From: Geosiphon pyriformis uo1
Lineage: Eukaryota > Fungi > Glomeromycota
Reading direction: 5' to 3'
Length of the DNA stretch: 64,000 bases
NCBI GenBank assembly: GCA_016748015.1
Contig: JAAOMT010000607.1
Span: 124,001-188,000, forward strand
The position numbers were made by a program, and so were the translations under genes. A model generated the notes under the pieces. The model worked only from the letters and a program-made list of their open reading frames with translations, did not search any database and had not been told where the DNA came from. Shown one piece after another: positions 1 through 48,300 of the stretch. Position 1 is the first letter of the stretch, and every line of letters begins with the position of its first letter.

Positions 1-846
1 GCGGTGATTACCACCTGACGTCAATACATAAGAAATTTATTTCAATCACGTTAATTTCTACCATCTTAATTAATATTCATTTCAGAATGTAATCTTACCT
101 GCATTGGAATTGTACTTTGGTTGGCCAGTCAAAAGACCCCCAGTGCTAGGATTACCTTCAATTAATAAGATTGCATCTTAATTGGCAACTATACCCGATA
201 ACTTTAATGTCATGTATGTATCGATGTAGGAAAAATTATTACTCGTATACTTGGTAGCTAAAACGATTTCTGAACGTTTATCCGAGATTAATTCACCAAG
301 AAACTTTTCGCTCTGTATAGGTAAAATATTTTTATTAAGTCATTAGTCTGCACATTTAATACTTCGATAAGTTGGAAATACCGAGCCTTGGGTATAAATA
401 TTCGCCGTATCTTTTCGACGGATGAAAAATTAGCAATTGAATTATCTTATTTACCCTGTAATGACCACATTATTGATTAGCTTCTTACCGATAAAATTCC
501 CTCCTTTTTCATAATAGTAGTCAAAAACTTTCTTAGATTCTTCAAAATTAGAGCCAAAACCCTAAAATAAAACGCAGTGTCCAGCATTAAATAATTAAAA
601 ATTCATCTTTCAACAATGGAGATTAATAACTTTTATTTACCCACTCTTCACCAAAAGTCTTAGATAGTTAACGAAAAATTATAATTAGCTTATGTAGTCA
701 ATATTTTCAATTTTTCGTCGATAATCACAAAATGTGCCTACCATAGTGCCTAAACATAACGGTGAAACACGTAGCCCCGTAGAACCAAGAAGTACATGAT
801 GATCAAGTCCCTTTAATTTGGGAACGTTAGAAGTATCAGTCGTCAT
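1..846 (-). CDS. Aldo-keto reductase (aryl-alcohol dehydrogenase-like), 5' half, multi-exon, runs off the window start
   Basis: Hand-spliced exons 846-742, 658-641, 561-489, 410-382, 312-243, 176-99, 14-1, all GT..AG and in frame: MTTDTSNVPKLKGLDHHVLLGSTGLRVSPLCLGTM-TFGEEW-GFGSNFEESKKVFDYYYEKGGNFI-DTANIYTQGS-SEKFLGELISDKRSEIVLATKYT-N..NSNAG-GNHR. Contains the AKR motifs LGxTGLRVSxLCLGTM, GNFIDTANxY (catalytic D, Y) and ATK (catalytic K). Confidence 0.9.
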
Positions 847-1904
847 TCTTCAAAATTCGTTGCTGTTATAAAAAAACCACAAAAAATATGAAAGCCAGTC
901 AAAAGGCTTTGGTAAAGTTTTGCCTCTTTCTGTTTATATCATAGATTAATAATCAAAGATCTCGGGAAAAACAATTATTCGACCAATTCAGGTTTGTTAA
1001 AGTGTAACATATCCGGGTCTGAAATCTACCGGCTAAGCAGATCTGAAATGGAAATTTTGTTAAACATATCCAATTTTACCAATATGCTTTGAAGCTATAT
1101 TTCTAATAATAGGATTGAGATTTTAAATAAGTGAATATAACGCATATACTCTATTTTGTTTTTTTCGTAGAAAGAGTTTGATAATCCTCACTGCTTGCAT
1201 TGGGTATAATTTTATTCTATATCTTATAAAATCAATTTTTAATAATTAATCTGTTCATAAAACCCAATATAAAGAATATATCATAGACAATCTGATTGGT
1301 TACTTGTTATAGTAATAATAATCTTAATGATTCTGAAAACAAAAATATTTTCAACATAAACGACTATTTTTTAAAATAAAACAGTTTCAATACTTTTTAC
1401 AAATACTAAATTAGAAATCATTTTAATACTACATTGACTATTAAAAAACAAATCATTATAATCAACATAAATAATGTATATACGAACAAAAACAACCAAA
1501 ATAAAAAACTAATTGCAAAATAAATAAATATATGTTTAAATGCAGAATAACAAAATTATTACAGTCTTTAACATGCTTCAAAAAAACTTGCCTATTAATA
1601 AAAATTTGCTATATGAAAACAATTAAAGCTTTATTAACATCTTAATAAAATATAAAAGACATTAACCATTGCAAAAAAAGCCAAGACTTTTATACAAAAA
1701 TTTTATCTTTAGATATCAATCTGATTTTATCGAAAAATTCAATCTAAATTAGTAAGTTTTAATATAAGGCCAAAAACTTTAAACAAAGTCTTTTTTAAAT
1801 AATTATGTTTAAATTTTTTGAAAAAAATAATTTTATAATTAATTTTATTATTATTACATGTTTTATCTAATGTTATATATTAAGCCACGTATTTTTAAAT
1901 ACTA

Positions 1905-1992
1905 ATTGTTAATATGATTACTAACTTAGTTGTTAATTACATTGTTAATCTAATTATTAACCTAATAGTTAACTTAATTGCTAATCTAATTA
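1905..1992. repeat. Degenerate ~12-bp tandem repeat (TAAYYTARTTGT-like units)
   Basis: Recurring taacttagttgt / taatctaattat / taacctaatagt / taacttaattgc units within AT-rich decayed DNA. Confidence 0.5.
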
Positions 1993-2559
1993 TTTATTGA
2001 TTTCCATATTTATATTTTTTTAAAATTGGTTAAGTATTTTATTAATTCTTGAATAATTAACACAAAAATGTAATTTTTTTCAATATTATTATAATTAAAA
2101 ACGTTTATTTGTTTTTTTTTGAAAAAAATTTAATAAATAAGATTTTAAATAGATAAAATAAACTTTTTAGTTTTAATTTCATATTAAATAACATTTGTAA
2201 GTTTTTTAATATAATTTTATTATTTTTAACCATAAAATTTTGATATTTTTTTAATTTAAAAATTTTTTGGGTTAATTATCAAAAATTTAATTTTAGGTAA
2301 TTTGTTTAATTTTTTTAGCATCAAACTAATTGATTTAAATTTTGATAATAAATTAAAAAAATTTTGCTAAAAAATAAAAAGATTAATTATACCAGTATTT
2401 GGCACCAAATACATATTACCAATGATTTTGGTTTTTTTTGAATATATTATAATAGAACTAGCAAATAAATTAATTTTTTGTTAAATTTAACCTTTTTCAA
2501 AAATTTATTATTCTTAATAAAAATAATTAAAGCAAGCTCAACAATTTTTTTACATGTTT

Positions 2560-3620
2560 TTTATTTATTTATTTAATAAATAAAGTTCAACCACTACCTA
2601 TTAACATATAGTTAAATAAGATTCTAAAATAAGTGTGGTTTATGTCTTTTTTACACATAACCAGTCATTCAAACCAGTCAAGACTAAACTATGTTGAAAC
2701 TACAGAAAGAAACTTACCCGAAAAGATCATTCTTTAAACTATTTCAATTATTTTATGACTATTCAGAATCAAACCAGCCAATTATTTAGCAGTTTTCATA
2801 AAATCAAACTTAATTTCATTAAAAGTTTCATACATCCAAAGTATTATTAGATTAACAAAAACCTTCTTACATTCAAAACAACTTAAGTCTTCAACTATAT
2901 TAGCATTAATATTAAATTTAAACACATTGAGTTCACTTTTTATATTATATTTGATTTTTAATATCACCATTTTTTTATCTAGCTTATAAATAATACTACT
3001 GAAAACTTTTATATATTTTCTAATCTTTTTAATCTTATTCACAAACAAATAATTAATACCATTATTTTTTTAAGAAAATATTCAATAAATTTAATTAGTA
3101 TAGTCAGCTTATTCAGATCAGATTTCAGAGAAGTCAATTGAGGAAAAACCAACAAATCAATAATAATAGCAATAAATGTAGCCAAAGAAGCAGCACTAAA
3201 AAAAATCAGAAAGACAAAAGTTTTTGTATAAGATTTTACACCAACAAAAAATAAAATAAAAGTCTTAGAATCATTAGCAAACTTAAAAAAAAACCTAGAA
3301 AGAAAATGCAGCAACATCTTATAATCTGAAAATATATAATCCAAATTCTGAAATTTGTAATAATGATGACATTAAGGAGTGTTCCACCAGATACAATACT
3401 TGTACAAAGTGCTAGTTTTTATAGCAGCAGTATTTAGAGTCTTTAAAAATTTAAAAGTCACAACAGCAAAATATTGAGAACAATAAGAATTTAAAAAAGC
3501 AAAGAATAAAACATTTATGACCACCAACTTGAAAAATAATATCACTAATTATAAAAGCAGTACAATTAAAAAAATAATTAACTAAAAGAAAAATTCTAAT
3601 ACTGTTTTTTTAATTAATAC
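2560..3620 (-). mobile_element. Decayed 3' portion of an ORF1-only LINE-like element with the shared LINE 3' tail
   Basis: ORFs 3039-3344 and 2782-3048 align by eye with the C-terminal part of the ORF1 at 20868-21494 (LTSLKSDLNKL vs LADLKSELVK; KLDKKMVILKIKY vs KLK*EMVALKIKY; KTAK vs KTAE). The shared tail follows at ~2560-2700. Confidence 0.65.
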
Positions 3621-3627
3621 AAACTAA

Positions 3628-4450
3628 TATTATGAAAGTGTTTTTTTAGTATATTGATTATTAATACTCCCAGTTTAATTATAATCAGTTTTTCGTGAGT
3701 TTTTTAATTCTGGTTGTATAATAGTACTAATATTATAATGAAGATTTTTTGTGAATATCATAATATAAATTCTTTCTCAAATTTTAATTGTTGTTGTGTA
3801 TTTATATATTTTTTCTTAGAGGTTAATCTGAAATCTATTTATTGTTGTTGGAGTTTTCTTTGAAGTTATCCGTAAAATGATCATAAAAATAAAAAAAATA
3901 AAAATTTTTTTATTTGTTAATATTATTTATGTTATTTATTAGTTTGTAATTTAAAAAAAATTGTTTATTTAATATTAAATAATAAATTTATATAGTTTAT
4001 AATTAAACAATAGTTTATTTTTTTCGAATTATTTATTGTTAACAATAATTGTGTAATCTTTAATTTTTAATATTTTGATATCGGTATTAAAATGTATTTT
4101 ATTTAAATAAATAAATATAACTTTAATAATACTAAACTTTTTTTGATTGTTTTTAAAAGTGTTAAGCAACACTACTTAAAAAACAATTTGCTGTTTGAAA
4201 TTAAATTAACAAAATATTTAGCTATTTAAATTTTATAATTTACAAAGTAATATTCTTATCATCAATTAAAATAACTTAAACAAAGTATTTTTAATAATAT
4301 TTAAATATATATTAAATATTTTGTTGTTTTTTTTAAGATCACTTTTATTTTCTAATTTTTAATATTGAATATAAGAATGTTAATTTCATCTTCTAATTTT
4401 TGGTTTATAAAAATAAATAATTATATTGTTAATTTTCTATAGCATAATAA
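3628..4450 (-). mobile_element. Strongly decayed LTR-like copy related to the solo LTR at 5188-6054 (right end approximate)
   Basis: 3650-3880 is colinear with 5210-5440 (aatcagt..ttcgtgagt, ctgaaatcta, shared spacing). It starts TATTATGAAA, a transition-decayed form of TGTTACGGGA. Confidence 0.5.
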
Positions 4451-13526: not shown

Positions 13527-14149
13527 TACGTTTGATTAGAAATATAACAGTTTTTATGTACTATTTTAGTTATCAGCGAAGTTTTTTCCAATTTCTTGTC
13601 AAGTTTTATTTATTAATAAATATATTTTTGTTTCTATTTTTTTAAAAAACAAACTACAAATAGCTTATTAATATGAAAATATTTATAAAAAGATTTAAGC
13701 GTTCAAAATCTTTTGTTATAATTATGTAAAAATAAAAAAGTATTTAATTTAAGAAATGTTTATTAATAACTTTGTATTGTTTAAAAATAATCTTAAATTT
13801 TCTTTTCACATGCCTAAATGTCAGTTCTTATGCAAGTTATAAATAATATAAGGCACATAAAAAGGAAAATATTTATTAATGCGTTAAATTTACCAAATTT
13901 AGTTTTAATTCCTGGTATTTGTCATATAGTATTCACAATGAGGTAAAAATCTAGTAATTCTTCGTTTTTGTTATTAAAAAATGGACATGAATAGAAAATT
14001 TGGACTGGCACACCGAGAAATTACAAATAATGAATATGTTATCTCATCAATATTTTTTAAAAAGTTGTTTTTAAATTTCACGACAGTGTGAACAAATAGT
14101 AAAACCTGCGATAGATTAGGTAGATTGGGTAACCTGCGATAAATAGACA

Positions 14150-14469
14150 TTTTTTATGAGCAACGGCCCCTTTTGAGGGCAGACCCAATTGAAGGTACTG
14201 TAAAGTCGACCAAACAACTTTGAATGGAAAATTCAAACGAGTAATACTTTTATTATTGAGACAGGTAAGCTTAAAAATAGAGGTCCTTCTTTATTACATT
14301 TAGCAATCAGTTTTTAAGAACAACGGCACCTTTTGAGAGCAGACCCAATTGAAAGTACTGTAAAGTTGACCAAACTAAGTGACACAACTTTGAATGGAAA
14401 ATTCAAACAAGTAATACTGTTATTATTGAAACAGGTAAGCTTAAAAATAGATATCCTTCTTTATTACAT
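14150..14469. repeat. Tandem duplication (~160 bp x2) in the 3' non-coding part of the MULE
   Basis: caacggc..ttttgag.gcagacccaattgaa.gtactgtaaagt...caggtaagcttaaaaataga...ccttctttattacat occurs at ~14161-14299 and ~14321-14469. Confidence 0.9.
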
Positions 14470-14497
14470 ATAACGATCAGTTTTTATTGTAAAAAAC

Positions 14498-17400
14498 TTA
14501 AATCTTTCCATAGATGACAAAATCCATTGTATAACCACTTTTGGGAGGAGGACGCGAACTTCCAATTGCCATCGCCCTTGCTTTGTAAGTTTTTTGCAAC
14601 CCATCGTATTGATACCAGCCAGAATTTTTAACATTTTCGAAACGAACATCGGCAATATGATGGATGTCGTTACAAAAAGAAACTCCCATCAGGCGATATC
14701 TATATTAAAAAATTAATAAATAAATACAGTAAGTGATAAACTTAATTCAAATTTACCTTTGTTTTGTAATTTGATTTCCTTTAGGAAAATTGATTTCTTC
14801 TGGTAAATCTTTGTTCTGAAGAGACGTCTTTTCATTAATAGTGCTAATTCCCGTAACATTGATGACAAGGATCAGAGGCAGTCGCTGGTCGATTTGTCTT
14901 TTTGATACGGTATCACCTGTGCATCGGTAAAAATACCTAAGAAAAGGTTAGAATGCAAAGCGAAAAAGAGGAAAAAATATAGACACTTTACTCAAGCTTC
15001 CCAGTCTCCAATGATACACATTTTTCAGTCATATAAGCATTTGTAGGAACGTTTTTTGGAGCCTCTCCGTTTGTCGATTTGAATTCTAATCCGCATGCAA
15101 TAACATAAGGATTTTGCCAGTGTTCAAGGCAAGACTCGAAATAATCATTTCCTGATAATACCGGAACCTGCGGTTTTCTACAAATTAAATTATGTGCATT
15201 AATATAAATATATCGACTGTAGCAAAATGAAAAAAATAAGCAAAAATGTCGCGTAAAATAAAAGATATATATGAACTTACATTAGGGTAATATCGAAACA
15301 CTTCACTGGGAATATGACTTTCTTTGGGCAGTTGTCAGAGCTGCACGTGGTCGTTATTGTACTTTTGACAACAAGATTCTGGTCCAAGGAGTCATGAAAA
15401 AACTGTTCAAAAAATCGTTCCGAAAGCCCTCCGAATAAATCCAACTCTTCTTCTTTCATTAAATTCGCATATGACGGTTAATTCGCAATCCAAAGAATCT
15501 TGGCTTCAAACCATCGTTTCTGTTTCATGAGCTCAAAAACGCGAAGACGATTTGTTTGCGAAGTTGGTTCAATTTCAGCGAAAGAAACGGCTTGTTTATA
15601 GATATTTTGGTTGTCGAAGGCGCTTTGAATTAAGGTTAGACTTGTATCCACTGGACACGTGGAAATCAAGCGCAACCCTCCTTGATTTCCACCATATGGC
15701 ATCGTATGAACAATCGAATTGCCATAAGAGTCTTTGTCTACTGGAGCTGACTGCATAGAGACGACTTGCTTCTTCAATTATTAAGTTATAAATTTATTAT
15801 TGGAGAAGAAAGATCATAAAAAAAGCAGTCATATTACCTTCGATTTTTTTTTGATGGCTCATCAGCATATCCAATAATATCAGCTAATTGAAGAGTGTGT
15901 TGCTCAGTATTACCATCTTCAAAGGTAATATCTACAATTATTTTGCCATCGCCAATAATCTCAGCGATCTGTGCTTTGTAATAAGGTCTATCTAAAACTG
16001 TATCCTGAAGCTGAATGGATTCTTGTGGTATTAATCGGGTTTTTCTTTTATTTTTAGGACCTCTCTTTTGGGGTAATCTAAGCTCGTTTTCAGCGCGGCC
16101 ATTAGCATCCCTCTGACGAAGATAAGACTCAAGAGAACTGGTTGTAGATGATTCGGCGGCAGACCTACGTAGAAAAGACAGATTATTATATAGACTGTAT
16201 AAAATAAAATAAAATAAAATATTACCTTTGCAATTTATATCTGTAAGAGAAAATGATATATCAATATTATTATTAATAAACTAACGAGATATTTACTTTT
16301 GAAACGTAGATTCACTAAAAGTAAAAGTAAACCATTAGTATATATATAAAATTAAACCAAATTAATAGAAGCTTTACCTCTCTATCTTAGATTCTTTAAT
16401 GAATAGACGAACAACTACAAGACATTAAAACTGCATGGACAAGCAAACTTTCCATTTCTACATGTAACATATAATGGTTTTATCCATTGTTTGAAGCAAT
16501 CTTTGTTAATTGCTTCAGGAATCTCTGATTCTAAATTCTCACTATTAAAGTGTTGAAAAGTAACATTCATGCTAGTAAACCGGATAACACTCCAGGTACA
16601 CTGATCAATTTCTAAAAGCGATATTAATTATGAATTGTTTTTAAGGGAAAAGATTGCACATAATGATTATTTACCTTGTACCAAATTTTTTTATATAACA
16701 GTTCTCCTTGTTGATTCATTTTTTCTTTTTCTCGTTCTAACTTTGATTTTGTTGGATTTTTGCCTTCTCCTTGCCAAAACCTTATAAAAAAGAACTTAAT
16801 ATCGTTTTTACAAAATTTCTTCTTGCGTTTTACCTTTCCATTTCTCCGGCATCAACACGCATTGACGTAGTAATTTTTTCAAGATTTGAATGTAGAGATT
16901 TGGTGTATCTTCCCCGATAATGTAGTATCATATCCTTTTTAAAATAACTCTCTACTAACATATTTGTTTTCATAGGACAATCAATACGCTTATAATCTGG
17001 CCAAGTATCTAGAGTATTAGGGTATTAATATGAAATATAAGTTATAAAATCAAATTATTTTTCACTAACCGATCCATTGGCTGAACCAATGTAATCGAAA
17101 ATAGGTCGTAATAGCTTTTGCGATAGCTAAATTTCTAATCCCAATAGCAGCTTGGAATTTTTGCGAGTCTAAGAGAGTAAGTTTCCGTTGATCGAATTCT
17201 TATTGATCTCGAGATCGTTTGACAAATCGAAATTGGTAAAATGTCCGATCTCTAAGCCATTGATCATTCAAGTTTTTTGCAAACCATTCTTTGAGCGCAT
17301 CAGCTATAAAATGATAATATTATAAGATTAAAATATAAAACCCAATAAATCTTTAAAACCTCACCTTCATGCCAATCACACAAGACTACTTGAGTTTTTG

Positions 17401-18803
17401 GAAAATGTTTCTTGGCTGCTACTAAATAAGAATCCCATTTATCCATAGCTAACCACTTGGGATTTGATTGAATATTGCTCTTACGACTATATTCAATAAA
17501 CTTTTAATAGAAAGAATTATTGTACAATTTATAAATTGAAAATTTCAATCGAACAAAAATTATTATACAACTTACTTGCTCAAACATTAAATCAATAACT
17601 GGTAATGTTTCTTTATCACTTATAAATGTTGCTAAAACTCGACCACGTGGTTCATCTGATCTAACCATAAAGACAGTATTGGAGAAGTTTAAGCTGTTGC
17701 GACGGCTAGTAGAATCTAGAGACAAAAAATCTGGATATTTGTATAATAGATTTTGACATGACTGTAGATGCAACACCAAGAAGTACAGCTTGATCCTTAG
17801 AATTCTGAGCATCCTTAATTCCATATTGTTTTGATATGACGACCCCTTCAGCCTCATAAGTATCCATTAGGGAACGAACCTGTTAATAAAGTGAATTAAT
17901 ATGATAATATATAAAAAAGTGAATGTAACCAATTTCTTACTTTTTCAAATTCTAACACATTTGGATAACGTAACTTTTTGTCGTACTTGAGAGCATTTTG
18001 AATTGTCTCAAGATTAGGTGCAAATCGAGCAGAAATTGGTTGAACTTGATTTGCAAATCTATTACTTGTGCTCAAAATCTTCGCATTATTCATTAATCTA
18101 AAAATAATTAATATTAATAAAATTCAATTACTTTTTCGAATTTATACTTAAACTTACCAGTTGCAATCATTGAAGGTGATGCATTTGTAGTTTTATTTGA
18201 GATGGTTTTTCTAATTGAGTTGGCCATTCGGTGTGGTTTTTTTCAGATGTGATCAGGATCATGATTTCCATAGCACACAATATTGCATAGATTGAGTGGC
18301 TTGTCATGAGGAACTGCAATACGACCCTTCCAATTACATTTAGTTTTATGACACCCATTCTATAAATAAAGATAAAGTTAATACTTTTTAATTTTGATTA
18401 GAAATTATTCTTTATTTTATACCCTATTGGAACATCCAAGATATTCTACGTATGCCAACTTTGAATTTGAATTTTTGTTTGCATCTTCATTTACAAGTGT
18501 AATGGCTTTTACATCTCCTTCACGTACCTTAATATTCAATAAAATAATATTATATATACAGAAGTATAATTCATATAAATAACAATCTCTTACCCGCTTC
18601 TTATGTATACAGTCATGATCTAGAATTTTATAGCCGTTACAAAGACTACCACCTCCTAGGGATACCGTATCAAACATATATAAGTCTAACACTGAGGGTA
18701 CTTCTATAAGTGGCACTTGTATGCATCGAATAGTTGACAATAATGGGCGCCAAATGGCCTTTTTTGTTTCAATAGAGCTAGTAGACAAAGCATAATCGCC
18801 CAT
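14498..18803 (-). pseudogene. Multi-exon MULE transposase fused to Tudor-like and USP/C19-like protease domains, lightly inactivated
   Basis: Spliced order: Zn finger YLGC..GCHKTKCNWKGRI..GNHDPDH; DDE core LSLDST (~17715), LAMDKWD (~17445), LCDWH (~17375), TNMLVESYF (~16950); SWIM-like YYVTCRNGKFACPC (~16450); basic motif KRGPKNKKK; beta-rich YYKAQIAEI..VDITFEDG; Cys box LISTCPVDTSL (~15656); LPLILVINV; His box YRLMGVSFC..HHIADV..WYQYDGL; stop at 14498. A few premature stops (~18245, ~17200, 15478) and at least one frameshift (~17755). Confidence 0.8.
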
Positions 18804-19349
18804 TAGTGATAATGTTATGGTAGTAAAGATAATGTACCTTTACCTTCTTTACACATTTTATATATTTCATTTTCTCACTTGATACGATCACGGGGTTTAC
18901 AGGTTTTTACCCTATTGCAATCTATCGCAGGTTTTACATTAGATGGCTGATCATCGCAGGTTTTACTATTAAAAATATATATCTGATTATTTTTTTTCTA
19001 TTTAAAAGGTATTAGAGTTTTTAAATAAACTGAAAATTTTTTTTTGGTTTGATACTTTAATATATGCTTTACAATAGACTTTAAAATTACTTTAATTGAT
19101 TTTTTTTTTGTTTTAATAATATATTAGTTTAATAATATGAATAGTAACAGCATTAATAATATTTTTTTAAAAAAAAACATATGAATATAAAATATTATTG
19201 GTTGAAATATTGTAAACATAAATATTAAATAATGTTCTAATATGTTTATGTTTAACATAAATTACATAAAAACTGTTTAATAATAATTTAATGTTTAAAC
19301 AAATAATAAACATAAATATTAAACAATATTTTAATATATCTTTTATCTT

Positions 19350-27200: not shown

Positions 27201-28189
27201 GAAAACCTACCCAAAGAAATCACTGCCACAGAAGAAATAACTAGTAGCTGGAAAAAAGAATACTCCCAAGAACTGATAAAAGAGCCACTATATATTTTTC
27301 TCAAATGCAAGGACTATAGAAAGAAACTGTCTTTTATGGGAGCTTGAGTTGCACCAAATGAAGATTACTGGATGCGAACTCACTACTATTGTAAGCCTTG
27401 TCACTGCAAATGCTATGACTACCCAAAAAGGCAAGACAAATAAGAAAATGAACCATGTTTCACTTATGGCAAACAACTACTTGATAAAGGAATGTGGAAC
27501 AACATTCCTGGGCAAGGAGGAACATGCGATGCTTTGTGCCAATACATAATCCTCATTAGTGACTGGGTAAGTCATGGTATGCCAATAACTGCAGCCTGGC
27601 ACCATGCAATATTTTGCTTGGACAGTTACCCACATAACAAAGATGAGATTTGGTGGATGGTGAATGCAAAAATAGAGGGTGCTACACTTAGCAAAATATT
27701 GAAAATCAAGAACAACTCTCCAGAGCCAGTTAATATTGTTCTGATTCCCAACCCAGATGCTTTTTTGGACCTGGAAGCAGACCCAAAAGAATTTCATAAG
27801 CACTACCAAAATTTGGCACCAACAAGAGAGGAACAAGAGCAACAGTTGGAAGAAATCAACACTCGACTATGTGATCATTGTTTGATTCCCTGTGACTTTC
27901 AATATTGTAATGAGTGTAACTTCATTTACAACCCATCAATCTGCATAATCTACACAATCTCAGAGGAAAAAAAACCAATCAGTAGCTGCACATCGGAATC
28001 AGAATCAAATTTCAATTCCAATTCAAACTCTGACAATGAAGATGATAAAAACAATGGTTCCAGCTCTGCTCCAATTAGTAACAAAAATTATGACAATTCA
28101 AACTCCGATTCATATCTTGAAACATTTATTGTGTTTTCTAACCTCACCAAGAAACAGGAACTTAAATGGTTTAGCAATAATAGCAAAGG

Positions 28190-28584
28190 TATCATGTCAG
28201 AACATGTGCATAATACTAATACAGAGTTTGATCTGAGATATTTAGGAAAAAATCCCATCAAATTGGAACCACATTTGCACACTTGCATTAATCTGAAAAT
28301 AGCACTGGAAATTCTAGCAACAACAATGGTTCAACTAGCATTCAGGAGTAGTTTAGTGAAAAAAAAAATTAACATCAGAGGAGGAATAATTGATGCAGGA
28401 TATGTAGGAAATATCATTGTTATGCTACAAAATGATTCAAAAAAAGCATATATCATAGATCTAAATGAAAAGATAACACAGACAATATTCTTACCTCTAG
28501 TGAAAATAGCACAGTTAGTATCAGTGAAAAACAGGGAAGAATTAGGGATTACTGCTAGAAAAATACAGAGATTTGAATTCATGG
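28190..28584 (+). pseudogene. dUTPase domain of element A (homologues at ~39160-39560, 47074-47470, 56871-57265)
   Basis: All five trimeric dUTPase motifs are recoverable across copies: AGFDL, RSSLAKK, GGIIDAGYVG, KIAQAIF and RxIQGFGST. Confidence 0.9.
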
Positions 28585-29469
28585 TATTATAAATGATTAT
28601 TTCTACTGTTGAATTAAATAACAAACTCGTAACTTGGTGCTCAAAAGCTACTTCCATTGAGGCTGTTCTGAAGGTACTGTATTTGAAGGTTTTGGTGGAT
28701 TTGAAAGTTTTTGTTTAGTCCTTTGTATAATGGACAGAGATTCAATAGTGTTGATAGTAGATATATTTTTCAAGAGTTTTCCCAATTTCTTTCTCAGCAT
28801 AATGGCCAGATTTAGTCTGGTAGTCGTGCCCTTCTGGTAAGCTATCCGATAATATATAAAATCCTACCTGTATTTCTGGATCTTTTACCAGGCTATCCTT
28901 GACATCAATAACTCAGTGCTTAATCTTTTTATTCAATTAGTATACAACAACAAAATCAAAGAAAGAAAAGAAAAGAAATAAAAAAAAAATAATGAAAGCA
29001 AAGAAATAAGCCAAGACAATTTGCAGATTATTATCCTGTTAATAGCCATGATCAAGAGCTATTGTTCCAGTGTGATTAAGTATCAATTATTATCAACATG
29101 AAGGGTTGATAGTGGGGAGTGGATTTGAGATATGAAATAATTATTTATTTGATGATTGTGTTTCTAAGTTAAGGATTCTGTGGTATCGATTCTGTTTTTT
29201 CTGTTTTTAACACTACTGCTATATATATATAATTGAAATTCCTCAATTCCTCGATTCTTCACGACAGGAATCTTGGAATTCCTGGAATCCTGCAATTCCT
29301 TTGAGAGGAATCCTGGAATTCTGGAATCCTGCAATTCCTCGTTGGGAATCCTGAAATTCCTGGAATCCTGCAATTTCTGAGAGGAATCCTGGAATTCCAC
29401 ATTTACTATGCTTACTTCTAATTGGCTAATAATTATGCTAATATATTTTTTATATTTCTATGAGTAACA
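28585..29469 (-). mobile_element. Solo LTR of the same superfamily inserted antisense in the dUTPase of element A
   Basis: Ends T(A)TTA..TGAGTAACA. The reverse complement matches the family LTR backbone, with a GGAATTCC-type repeat block at 29265-29398. TSD ATGG (28581-28584) / ACAG (29470-29473). Confidence 0.92.
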
Positions 29470-45300: not shown

Positions 45301-48300
45301 TTATATTCTTGGAATTCAAAAAATGAGTATACTTAAAACCTGAATTCTCAATATTATTTAAGTCTCTTAATTGTCCTAGAAAATTCTTATTCAGCAATTG
45401 AAAACCCAACCAGAAGCAATCACTTACCAGCAATATCCTACCAGCAATTATCACCAACAATGAATTATTAGCAGCAATTTTTTTCTTTAAAATCAAGAAA
45501 CCAGCAAAAACATATCTTTTTAGTGGAACTGCCTTTAATGTAAAACTCATTACCATGATGTATACTAATGCCAAAGCTGATGGTTAGTCCATTAAACTAA
45601 TCCTTAATAGTGGGTTAGCAAGCAGCATCATTACATGACAACTCATAGACCAATTAGATTACCAAGTTGATTACACTACCAGCATCAGAATTATTACAGC
45701 TAATAGAGTAACCAAAACTCCTATTGGTGAAATTGATAACTTTCTTTTTAAAGTTAATGGCATTATTGCTTTCATCAAAGTTTTAGTGATAGAAGCAACC
45801 CAATATTAAGTATTAGTTGGCAATAATTGATTGTTCAAAACCAACAGAATGCTTGATTAAACCACACAGGAGCTCTAACTCAATCAGAATGATTAGCACA
45901 CATGTGTACCAGTCACATATAGCCACTTTTGGATGAACACTACCCCAACACCACTTATAGAATTAGAAGAAAAAAAGAACAAACCTATCTGGAAAGCTTA
46001 TCAAGTGTCATGGACCAACAATGACCACAATAAGCTACTACTAATTCTAATTTGGAACAACAAAAAGAAAAAAAATAAAGAGGACAAACCTGACAAAACC
46101 ACAATTATAAAGGAAATAACTAGCAGCTGGAAAAGATCATACTCATATGAACTCATAAAAGAGCCACTACACATACCACTCAAATACAAAAACTGCAAAA
46201 AAAAACTGTCCTCTATAGGATCATGGATTACACCTAATAAAGACTATTAAACACATACCCACTACTACTGCAAACCATGTCACAAAGAATGCTATGGGTA
46301 CCTCAAATAACAAGGCAAGTAAGACAATGAACTATGTCTCACTTGTGGAGAACAGTTACTTGATGAAAAAATATGAAATAACATTCCTGGTCAAGAAAGA
46401 ACATGTAATGCCTTATGCCAGTACATAATTCTCATAAGTAACTGGATTAATTGTGACACACCTATTATTGTTATATAGCACTAAGCAATCTCTTACTTGG
46501 ACAGTTATTCACATGATGAAGATGAAATCTAATGAATGACCAATGCCAAAGTAGAGGGCACTTCACCCAGTAAGATCCTAAAAATAAAGAACAATCTGCC
46601 AAAACCAGTTAATATTATTCTCATCTTTAATCCAGATGTATTTTTAGATATTGAAACAGGTTCAGAGAAGTTTCACAAGCATTACCAGAATTTGGCACCA
46701 ACAAGAAAAGAGCAGAAACAGTACTTGGAAGAAATAAACACCTGACTATGTGACTATTGTTTAATCTCATATGACTTTCAATATTGTAATAAGTGTGATC
46801 TTATTTACAATTCACCACCACACATAATCTACACAATCTTTGAAAAAAAAAGAACCAATCAGCAGCTATGCATCAGAATTGGAATCAATGTTTAATCCCA
46901 ATTTAAACTTCAACAATGATGATAACAAAACTACTGGCTCTAGCTTTGTTTAAAATAGCAATAACAACAACAACAATTCAAACTCCAATTCAAACTCTAA
47001 ACAATATATTGCACTTTCTGATCTCATCAAAGAGCAAGAACTCAAATGGTTCAGTAATAATAATGAAGGTATTATGCCAAAACATGCACATAATATTGAT
47101 GCAAAGTTTGATCTGAGATATTTAGGAAAGGATGCCATCAAATTAGAACTATATTTACATACCTGTATTAATCTGAAAATAGTACTGGAAATCCCAGCAA
47201 CAACTATAGTTCAGTTAGTATCTAAGAGTAGTTTAGCAAAAAAGGAAATTAATATCAGAAAGGGAATAATTAATGCAGCATATGTAGGAAATATTATTGC
47301 AATGCTACAAAATAATTCAGAAAAGACTTATATTATAGAGCCAAATAAAAAGATAGCACAGATAATATTCCTGCCTCTAGTTAAAATAGCTCAGTTAGTA
47401 TTAGTAAGAAACAGAAAAAAATTAAGAATTACAGTAAGAAAAATTAGTGGATTCAGATCTATGGATAGAATAGACATATTAGTTAATATGGCAGAGGAAA
47501 AGTTATTAATAAGAGAAAAATTATCTCCACTCACCAATCAATTTTTATTCCATTATATGACCAGTACATATTAGTAATAAAAAAAAAAGTGAAGAATCAA
47601 GTTCAAATATTTGAAGCAGAAGCAATTATATGTGAATCAGAAGAAATTGGACTCACCAATCTTTATATACCAGCCAAGAACTACAACTATATTAAAATTT
47701 TTATCTACAATAAAACAGAAAACATCATAGAGATACCAAAAAAAACTATCATCAGATATTTAACTATTGAAGTTGAAAATCAACCACCAAACACCATTCT
47801 AGATTTTTTATAGCTTTGCAAATATGTAGATATCACATTACAAACAATCTACAGATGGAATGAATGTTATCTGTTCTAATTAGAACAATTAGAACAGATG
47901 AACTTAAGAAATCTAGACTTACTTCAACAAATGCAACTCAAAATGCTATTCAACAATTTCACTAACATCTTTGTCAATGAAAATGAATTTGGCAGAACTG
48001 ATATAATCTAATATCAGATTAAGACTGGAAATACAATGCCAATTAGGCAGAAAGCATACCAGATATCATCAGCAAGCCATAAAATCATCCAACAAAAAAT
48101 TAATAGAATGTTAGACAATGAGTTAATTCAACTATCAATGAGTTTATAATTTTCACCAATTGTATTAGTCCAGAAAAAGAATGGAAAAATTTGGTTTTGC
48201 ATAGATTACCAAAAACTTAATAGAGTGACAAAAAGAGACAACTATCCAACTCCAAAGATCTAAGAACTCTTTAATTGTATTTGAAGAAAAGAATAATTCT

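Follow-up and report, generated by a model that had tools for sequence, protein, structure and literature searches.

Within the 64,000-nucleotide stretch of contig JAAOMT010000607.1 from Geosiphon pyriformis uo1 analysed here (the window), the region 14080-18970 holds a broken copy of a multi-copy Mutator-like transposon family, whose gene occupies 17 exons on the minus strand (18803-14498) and leads from the coding region of a DDE transposase into that of a cysteine protease (Table 1). Eight of the introns in the window are seen as joints in RNA contigs and more as consecutive pieces, the remainder having been placed by GT-AG inspection and homology. An earlier, sequence-only reading had proposed that this Mutator-like element (MULE) carries a deubiquitinase-fold protease of the USP (ubiquitin-specific protease) type at the end of its transposase, and the motifs it quoted were all recovered on the minus strand in the claimed order. 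The explanation regarded as probable is that this is a glomeromycotan transposon of the Mutator superfamily whose single spliced gene encodes a fused protein with an active USP-fold cysteine isopeptidase, the activity being predicted.

The fusion is best seen in L058, a soil metagenome contig of 5093 nt (JGI 3300010373) that constitutes a complete element, its inverted ends perfect over 40 nt. Splicing of its 15 exons yields one open reading frame of 1116 amino acids with zero internal stops, in which a DDE/CxxH transposase, a SWIM finger, a linker and a C-terminal protease follow one another and the transposase-protease junction is in frame, supplying the intact copy that the sequence-only reading had proposed to look for. 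All of its introns are GT-AG except for one GC-AG (2541-2603), and one 284-nt intron (3947-4232) contains a short G-rich tandem repeat. An in-frame junction is likewise found in L059 (Cetraspora), L062 (Racocetra), L061 (a Logan contig) and the distant L057 (JGI 3300046693), whose protease is 35% identical, with the same intron positions and all key residues kept; the NCBI models P0058, P0059 and P0061 read across the junction, and P0110 covers both parts. L057 and L083 (from ENA) are distant relatives with the motifs (A/P)WGG...NTCP. Additionally, record 12 of the root metatranscriptome X3 is one spliced contig of 1298 nt leading from the SWIM exon through the mini-exons and the linker into the protease exons, and its frame is restored because, by arithmetic on contigs (a contig not being a single molecule), it is 7 nt longer than the spliced equivalent in the window. 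These in-frame junctions, in L057, L058, L059, L061 and L062, and the X3 contig spanning both parts argue against a separate captured gene, the outcome that was to have told against the fusion.

The junctions within Geosiphon weigh against such a continuous gene. The window's linker exon closes in phase 2 while entry into the protease exon calls for phase 0, leaving the junction one base short with the offset in a run of A. At this run between transposase and protease the frame is broken in 12 of 13 Geosiphon copies, as it is in L055 and RNA run X2. The run counts 8 A in seven Geosiphon copies, 9 in five and 7 in one, and 10 in the intact L058. The protease might accordingly be a second cistron or an optional extension, reached through slippage or a frameshift switch at the A-run or from its own start at an ATG near the beginning of exon 14, a view favoured by the absence of the 10-A form from every Geosiphon copy, by the recurrence of A9 in L055 and X2, and by an ATG at or near the exon start in several relatives. 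However, all undecayed elements examined are in frame, the run is interrupted in two in-frame relatives (L057 and L062), the out-of-frame genomic copies have many further lesions, and the shifts differ (-1, -2, -3), a better fit to homopolymer decay than to a programmed signal. Since the shifts differ and those genomic copies are otherwise damaged, the out-of-frame runs are read as homopolymer decay, and a second cistron or switch is considered very improbable. The earlier claim of one spliced, continuous gene therefore holds for the family, given the single frame of L058 and its in-frame relatives, and fails for the window copy with its stops, frameshifts and deletions.

The structural evidence points to a USP-like fold, not to Ulp1. 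When the thumb region was compared with 48,161 PDB chains, nine of the ten top matches had the USP fold (USP1, PAN2, USP25, USP18, USP16, USP9X), and the ESM Atlas model of homologue P0029 (predicted TM-score 0.63) matched UCH, UCH_1, PAN2 and USP48 clusters, with USP-fold clusters in 9 of 10 rows at TM-scores of 0.58-0.66 over 217-246 of 293 residues. AlphaFold gave low-confidence models for P0024 and P0029, a result of shallow alignments and of public gene models that each miss part of the domain. With these models, neither Foldseek (viral and PDB libraries) nor an Atlas shape search returned a usable match. The prediction is of a thumb-palm-fingers USP fold with a four-Cys zinc site. Ulp1/SENP proteases (C48) fit poorly, since here the Cys comes first rather than in the order His-Asp-Cys, and there was no Peptidase_C48 match in Pfam; OTU and VTD had no Pfam match and were not among the structural neighbours. 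P0013 and P0021 were discarded as homologues, their matches being spurious (repeats, ankyrins).

In an alignment rich in decayed copies, Cys802 is conserved in 52/53 sequences, His1063 in 30/34 and Asp1082 in 21/23, and the four finger Cys in 26/26, 25/27, 36/37 and 16/16. Alignment and motif spacing give the order Cys-His-Asp, as anticipated, and these three are the putative catalytic residues. The proposed membership in the C19/USP family is favoured by predicted fold and residue order, and several observations count against it in the strict sense. The oxyanion Asn of the Cys box N-x-G-N-T-C, the importance of which has been demonstrated (PMC12037411), is not conserved, position -5 being Y in 24 sequences, H in 14, Q in 9 and F in 4, and position -2 mostly S, and the host's own USPs carry the canonical box. 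The His box, C-(D/N)-G-N-H-H with W-Y-Q-Y-D-G as compared with H-x-G...G-H-Y and W-x-x-F-(N/D)-D in C19, retains the spacing with the first His, the Tyr and the second Asp altered. Searches made with single exons and database proteins as queries found no match to Pfam UCH or UCH_1 in exons or homologues and no protease match in PDB sequences with two profiles; the element was not among the matches of a PF00443 search of the Geosiphon genome, and its protease showed no similarity to the host USPs (best E 0.39). Because the Pfam and PDB sequence searches are blank and the oxyanion Asn is absent, the protease is described as USP-fold and not filed as a C19 member.

These departures bear on what the domain does. 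It could be a USP-fold module that no longer deconjugates, binding ubiquitin or serving as a scaffold that recruits host factors to the transpososome; a comparable USP-fold domain, in PAN2, is inactive, the best structural matches include PAN2 and C14orf28 clusters, and both the oxyanion Asn and the second Asp of the His box are absent. This is judged unlikely, as the Cys, His and Asp columns rank with the best conserved, the 35%-identical L057 included, and the divergent USP53 and USP54, formerly called inactive, were found to be active (PMC12037411). A self-processing protease has also been weighed, one that, like the papain-like proteases of viral polyproteins, would cleave the fusion within its linker and so free or mature the transposase, or would act on a host restriction factor instead; neighbours in a feature search include picornaviral L protease (C28, 0.91) and giant-virus proteins, and the domain sits behind a basic, flexible linker. 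The fingers with their four-Cys site are the part of USPs that holds ubiquitin. Their conservation here, structural neighbours that are USP-fold and not leader proteases, and a linker alignment with no conserved cleavage motif render self-processing distinctly unlikely.

The protease has been maintained along with the transposase. Gigaspora, Cetraspora, Racocetra and Dentiscutata (Gigasporaceae) have elements of the L058 layout, and a contig of Ambispora, like Geosiphon a member of the Archaeosporales, holds the protease part; homologue searches found none from Rhizophagus, and scanning metagenome and viral contigs by pattern brought up no relative. Relative to L058, the ratio of nonsynonymous to synonymous change (dN/dS) is 0.09-0.22 for the protease (seven loci) and 0.06-0.17 for the DDE core, values obtained by simple counting at a proportion of synonymous differences (pS) of 0.4-0.7, with dN inflated by decayed copies. 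Trees of transposase and protease (13 rows) recover the same groups, namely window/L058/L061, L059/P0110/P0060, L062/P0059 and L055/P0058, the rows being few and deep support weak. Purifying selection, congruent trees and the spread of homologues together indicate that the protease travels with the transposase. They also count against its being a passenger, a host USP fragment captured Pack-MULE style and of no function for the element, for which one may cite host-gene capture by MULEs (PMC6431247) and short non-autonomous copies with nothing but the 3' protease exons. Those short copies derive from the long element by internal deletion, no intact stand-alone copy appears among the profile matches of the genome, and the dissimilarity to host USPs led to the rejection of capture from a host USP, so that a passenger is scarcely credible.

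The assignment of the transposase to MULEs stood, on the evidence of its DDE residues, CxxH, terminal inverted repeats and 8-bp target site duplications. In L058 the triad comprises D282, D348 and E471, with C369-H372 after the second Asp, and all are retained in the window. Pfam detects the domain below its thresholds: MULE (PF10551) at 19.4 and 17.4 bits (one exon; a gapped gene model) against a cut-off of 27.6, and ZSWIM1-3 RNaseH-like at 23-27 bits against 27.2, the corresponding E values for window exons 5-9 being 0.0015 and 3.7e-5, both below cut-off. The SWIM finger, CPC-x-C-x-H beside the DDE domain in relatives, is recognised by motif alone and had no Pfam match, nor did the N-terminal zinc-finger-like region, for which the L058 counterpart was searched. 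Zisupton/KDZ elements also have 8-bp target site duplications, SWIM and Ulp1; a KDZ-type transposase profile gave no match, and Pfam on near-complete models returned only MULE, ISL3 and ZSWIM RNaseH-like. The 8-bp duplication fits the 8-11 bp of Mutator/MULE elements (PMC6446971).

The ends of the element were defined across the Geosiphon genome (128.3 Mb, 792 contigs, AT-rich), in which a DNA search with 14095-18970 yielded about 20 long copies of 74-93% identity and many short copies joining the first 619 nt of the element to its last 820 nt. True ends open with ACGACAGGG and have 8-bp target duplications; in intact short copies they begin with ACGACAGGGTGAAATC, then come several GTAAAACCTGCGAT repeats, a pattern with 29 occurrences genome-wide and 0 in the control. 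The perfect 18-bp inverted repeat, previously taken for the terminal repeat, is real and is one inner subterminal repeat: other copies reach about 15-30 bp beyond it, out to ACGACAGGGTGAAATC, with 8-bp duplications flanking, which ruled it out as the element end. A TA target duplication, suggested by the window alone, was dropped after these outer ends were found. In the 11 copies with both ends, true flank pairs match at 6.9/8 positions versus 6.0/8 for shuffled partners (p = 5e-5), with 8/8 in four copies and 7/8 in four; the shuffled value is this high because the target is AT-rich (ATTATAAT-like). The window keeps its outer end at 14080 only, the 5' outer end being lost, and past 18970 a high-copy repeat comes next; the flank of copy L041 is a repeat with many paralogues.

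Table 1. Features of the element copy, in window coordinates
Feature	Position	Strand	Evidence
True outer terminus on the gene 3' side, opening ACGACAG; shortened variant of the family's terminal inverted repeat end	14080..14098	+	Same start in 29 termini genome-wide, 0 in control
Subterminal GTAAAACCTGCGAT repeats, including 18-bp repeat arm 14095-14112	14099..14143	+	
Tandem duplication of about 170 bp in 3' untranslated region	14148..14486	.	Repeat arms 90-92% identical
Exon 17: His-box-like YRL..SFC.xHH (HH 14662-14657, putative His 14662-14660), WYQYDG (putative Asp 14605-14603), last strand, stop	14498..14699	-	Intron by GT-AG inspection, L058 homology
Exon 16: fourth finger Cys (14923), LPLILVINV palm strand	14757..14936	-	RNA joint 14933/14989
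Exon 15: finger region, third finger Cys (15095), insert of about 38 aa ahead of fourth Cys	14992..15177	-	Joint 15177/15281 in all three RNA runs
Exon 14: PYGG, putative catalytic Cys of TCPVD (15657-15655), thumb helices, first finger Cys pair (15345, 15330); stop 15480-15478	15281..15771	-	
Exon 13: linker, basic KRGPKNKRK stretch and small beta-rich domain; ends in A-run 15852-15844	15838..16164	-	
Two mini-exons, 16314-16297 and 16240-16226	16226..16314	-	X3 RNA: 31 nt separate 16166 from 16378
Exon 10: zinc finger of SWIM type (relatives: CPC...C..H); window copy lacks 25 nt and 33 nt	16378..16611	-	
Exons 5-9: DDE core, D 17716, D 17443, CxxH 17380-17369, E 16952	17879-17576, 17500-17365, 17303-17070, 17008-16834, 16780-16675	-	RNA contigs, Pfam matches under cut-off
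Exons 1-4: N-terminal region, C-x4-C...H-x3-H zinc-finger-like motif	18803-18594, 18527-18423, 18359-18158, 18097-17941	-	RNA contigs
5'-end subterminal repeats; outermost ~30 bp and target site duplication missing, high-copy repeat adjoins	18901..18970	-	

The copy in the window is an apparently transcribed and spliced pseudogene, and it is dead. Stops interrupt it at about 18245, 17202 and 15480, the last confined to this copy; the frame shifts near 17750, 16736/16686 and 15852, and 33 nt are missing at about 16541 and 25 nt at about 16421, the latter loss taking out the last SWIM ligands. With three stops, several frameshifts and these ligands lost, it cannot make the protein. Records 2 and 3 of RNA run X1, which bears SMART cDNA adapters, have zero differences to the window, its specific deletions included, so that this very copy is apparently transcribed and spliced. 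In some copies, an extra intron spliced in X1 (18759-18837) takes away the ATG at 18803 that is predicted as the start. The KRGPKNKRK stretch of the linker is likely a nuclear signal; a Tudor-like identity for its beta-rich domain, suspected by eye, was unsupported on checking.

At 14335-14710 of the window, X1 and X3 contigs leave out 14432-14512 between plus-strand GT..AG borders, and a SMART adapter precedes 14335. Together these suggest that an antisense RNA runs from the element's 3' end over the final exon of the protease and is spliced; sense transcription may start near 18867, where a second adapter lies. Judging from these contigs, inward-facing promoters at both ends would resemble the arrangement of MuDR. 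Spliced relatives that share about 95% identity with the Geosiphon copy are present in the soil (X2) and root (X3) metatranscriptomes, X3 being without the stop at 15480 and keeping the Cys codon with a silent change; another fungus may harbour an active close relative, and horizontal transfer is possible.

Geosiphon copies L002-L020 have undergone strong one-way C>T/G>A erosion (719 versus 21 changes in L003, for example), and as most copies differ by such changes from the one in the window, the latter ranks with the least eroded. Non-autonomous elements of 1.0-1.6 kb that form a young subfamily, with up to 98% identity to the window and a common deletion junction from element nt 619 to 4054, lie on contigs C596, C474, C709, C718, C639, C537, C453 and others; X1 RNA spans this junction (14917/18423). 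Elsewhere in the window, dUTPase-like open reading frames at 27492-28592 and 47074-47574 (plus strand; Pfam E 7e-11 and 1e-14), in the A-skewed repeat region at 24-64 kb, are probably retroelement remnants.

Transposases of the MULE superfamily bind the subterminal repeats, pair the ends, excise the element and insert it. The fused protein of about 1,120 amino acids would comprise a zinc finger, the DDE transposase, the SWIM finger, the linker and the C-terminal USP-fold isopeptidase, and we infer that the latter is active, removing ubiquitin or a ubiquitin-like tag. Because the fusion would place the protease wherever the transposase binds, its action is expected to be local: tethered to the DNA-bound transposase, it would strip degradation or extraction signals from the transpososome and nearby proteins, allowing the complex to last long enough for excision and insertion. 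If the fused isopeptidase is active, such stripping is tentatively its most likely role; editing of histone ubiquitin or of repair factors at the break comes next. For Helitrons, whose VTD domains are active, a similar removal of marks has been proposed (PMC9741609), and Bao et al. proposed an effect of Ulp1 and OTU domains on DNA repair (PMC2836005).

A further and more doubtful proposal is that the domain is the founder of a new family, active isopeptidases with a USP fold that Pfam does not detect and that did not arise from host USPs. It would have an altered oxyanion arrangement, possibly formed by the conserved P(Y/W)GG loop or the Tyr/His/Gln at -5, and would defend the element against a ubiquitin- or SUMO-based step that limits transposition. 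Giant viruses and other eukaryotes may contain relatives (P0020, Atlas feature matches). If true, it would point to an undescribed host control of fungal DNA transposition. As a sequence-orphan USP-fold domain overlooked by standard annotation, the protease is relevant to deubiquitinase classification, and the intact, single-gene L058 makes its role testable with one point mutant in a yeast transposition assay.

The sequence-only reading knew of no described fungal example, and literature searches, with most subscription papers and Repbase outside their scope, found no earlier report of a transposase paired with a USP-fold protease for Mutator-like elements or fungi; the main texts of a MULE survey, a fungal DNA transposon survey (PMC5751038) and a survey of transposable elements in arbuscular mycorrhizal fungi (PMC11952901) do not mention a USP-type domain. 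The general theme is older than that reading implied: Bao et al. had noted a Trichomonas protein with transposase_11 and Peptidase C19 (PMC2836005), and UCH domains are reported in Helentrons (PMC11417382). Transposon-borne Ulp1, OTU and VTD domains are known as well.

Ulp1-bearing Mutator elements (Kaonashi/VANDAL-type) of hydra, lancelet, Arabidopsis, maize, rice and melon (PMC2836005) similarly join a MULE DDE transposase to a cysteine protease of the ubiquitin/ubiquitin-like system with a proposed role in transposition; however, in Ulp1 (C48, clan CE), which targets SUMO, the residues run His-Asp-Cys, whereas here Cys-His-Asp, a USP fold, a zinc-finger subdomain and a fungal host are combined. 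Ginger1 transposases carry a C-terminal OTU or Ulp1 (PMC2836005), the same placement behind a DDE transposase, and MuDR-6_HM has an OTU domain inside a MULE (PMC6446971), but these are other protease families in animal hosts, and the Ginger1 transposase is of the integrase type. Helitrons and Helentrons also bring their own deubiquitinases, VTD (PMC9741609) as well as OTU and UCH, the Pfam name for USP, the last in HLE2 subgroups (PMC11417382), yet they are rolling-circle RepHel elements without terminal inverted repeats or DDE. Giant-virus UCH clusters, USPL1, USP53/54, PAN2 and C14orf28 share the predicted fold and the succession from Cys helix through finger Cys to His/Asp strands, but do not match the element protease in sequence, whose Cys box is TCPVD after P(Y/W)GG without the oxyanion Asn and whose His box is SFC.GNHH rather than H.G...GHY. 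The one reported DDE transposase with a USP-class domain that was found, Trichomonas vaginalis XP_001314237.1 (PMC2836005), is a single protein with transposase_11 (PF01609) instead of MULE and a Peptidase C19 seen by the standard profile; the Geosiphon-type family, in contrast, is widespread and selected, and its protease escapes Pfam. Transposons have thus repeatedly acquired ubiquitin- or SUMO-removing enzymes (Ulp1, OTU, VTD, UCH), and this family is an independent case in a new combination of superfamily and host, with selection on the protease as strong as on the DDE core across two orders of mycorrhizal fungi.

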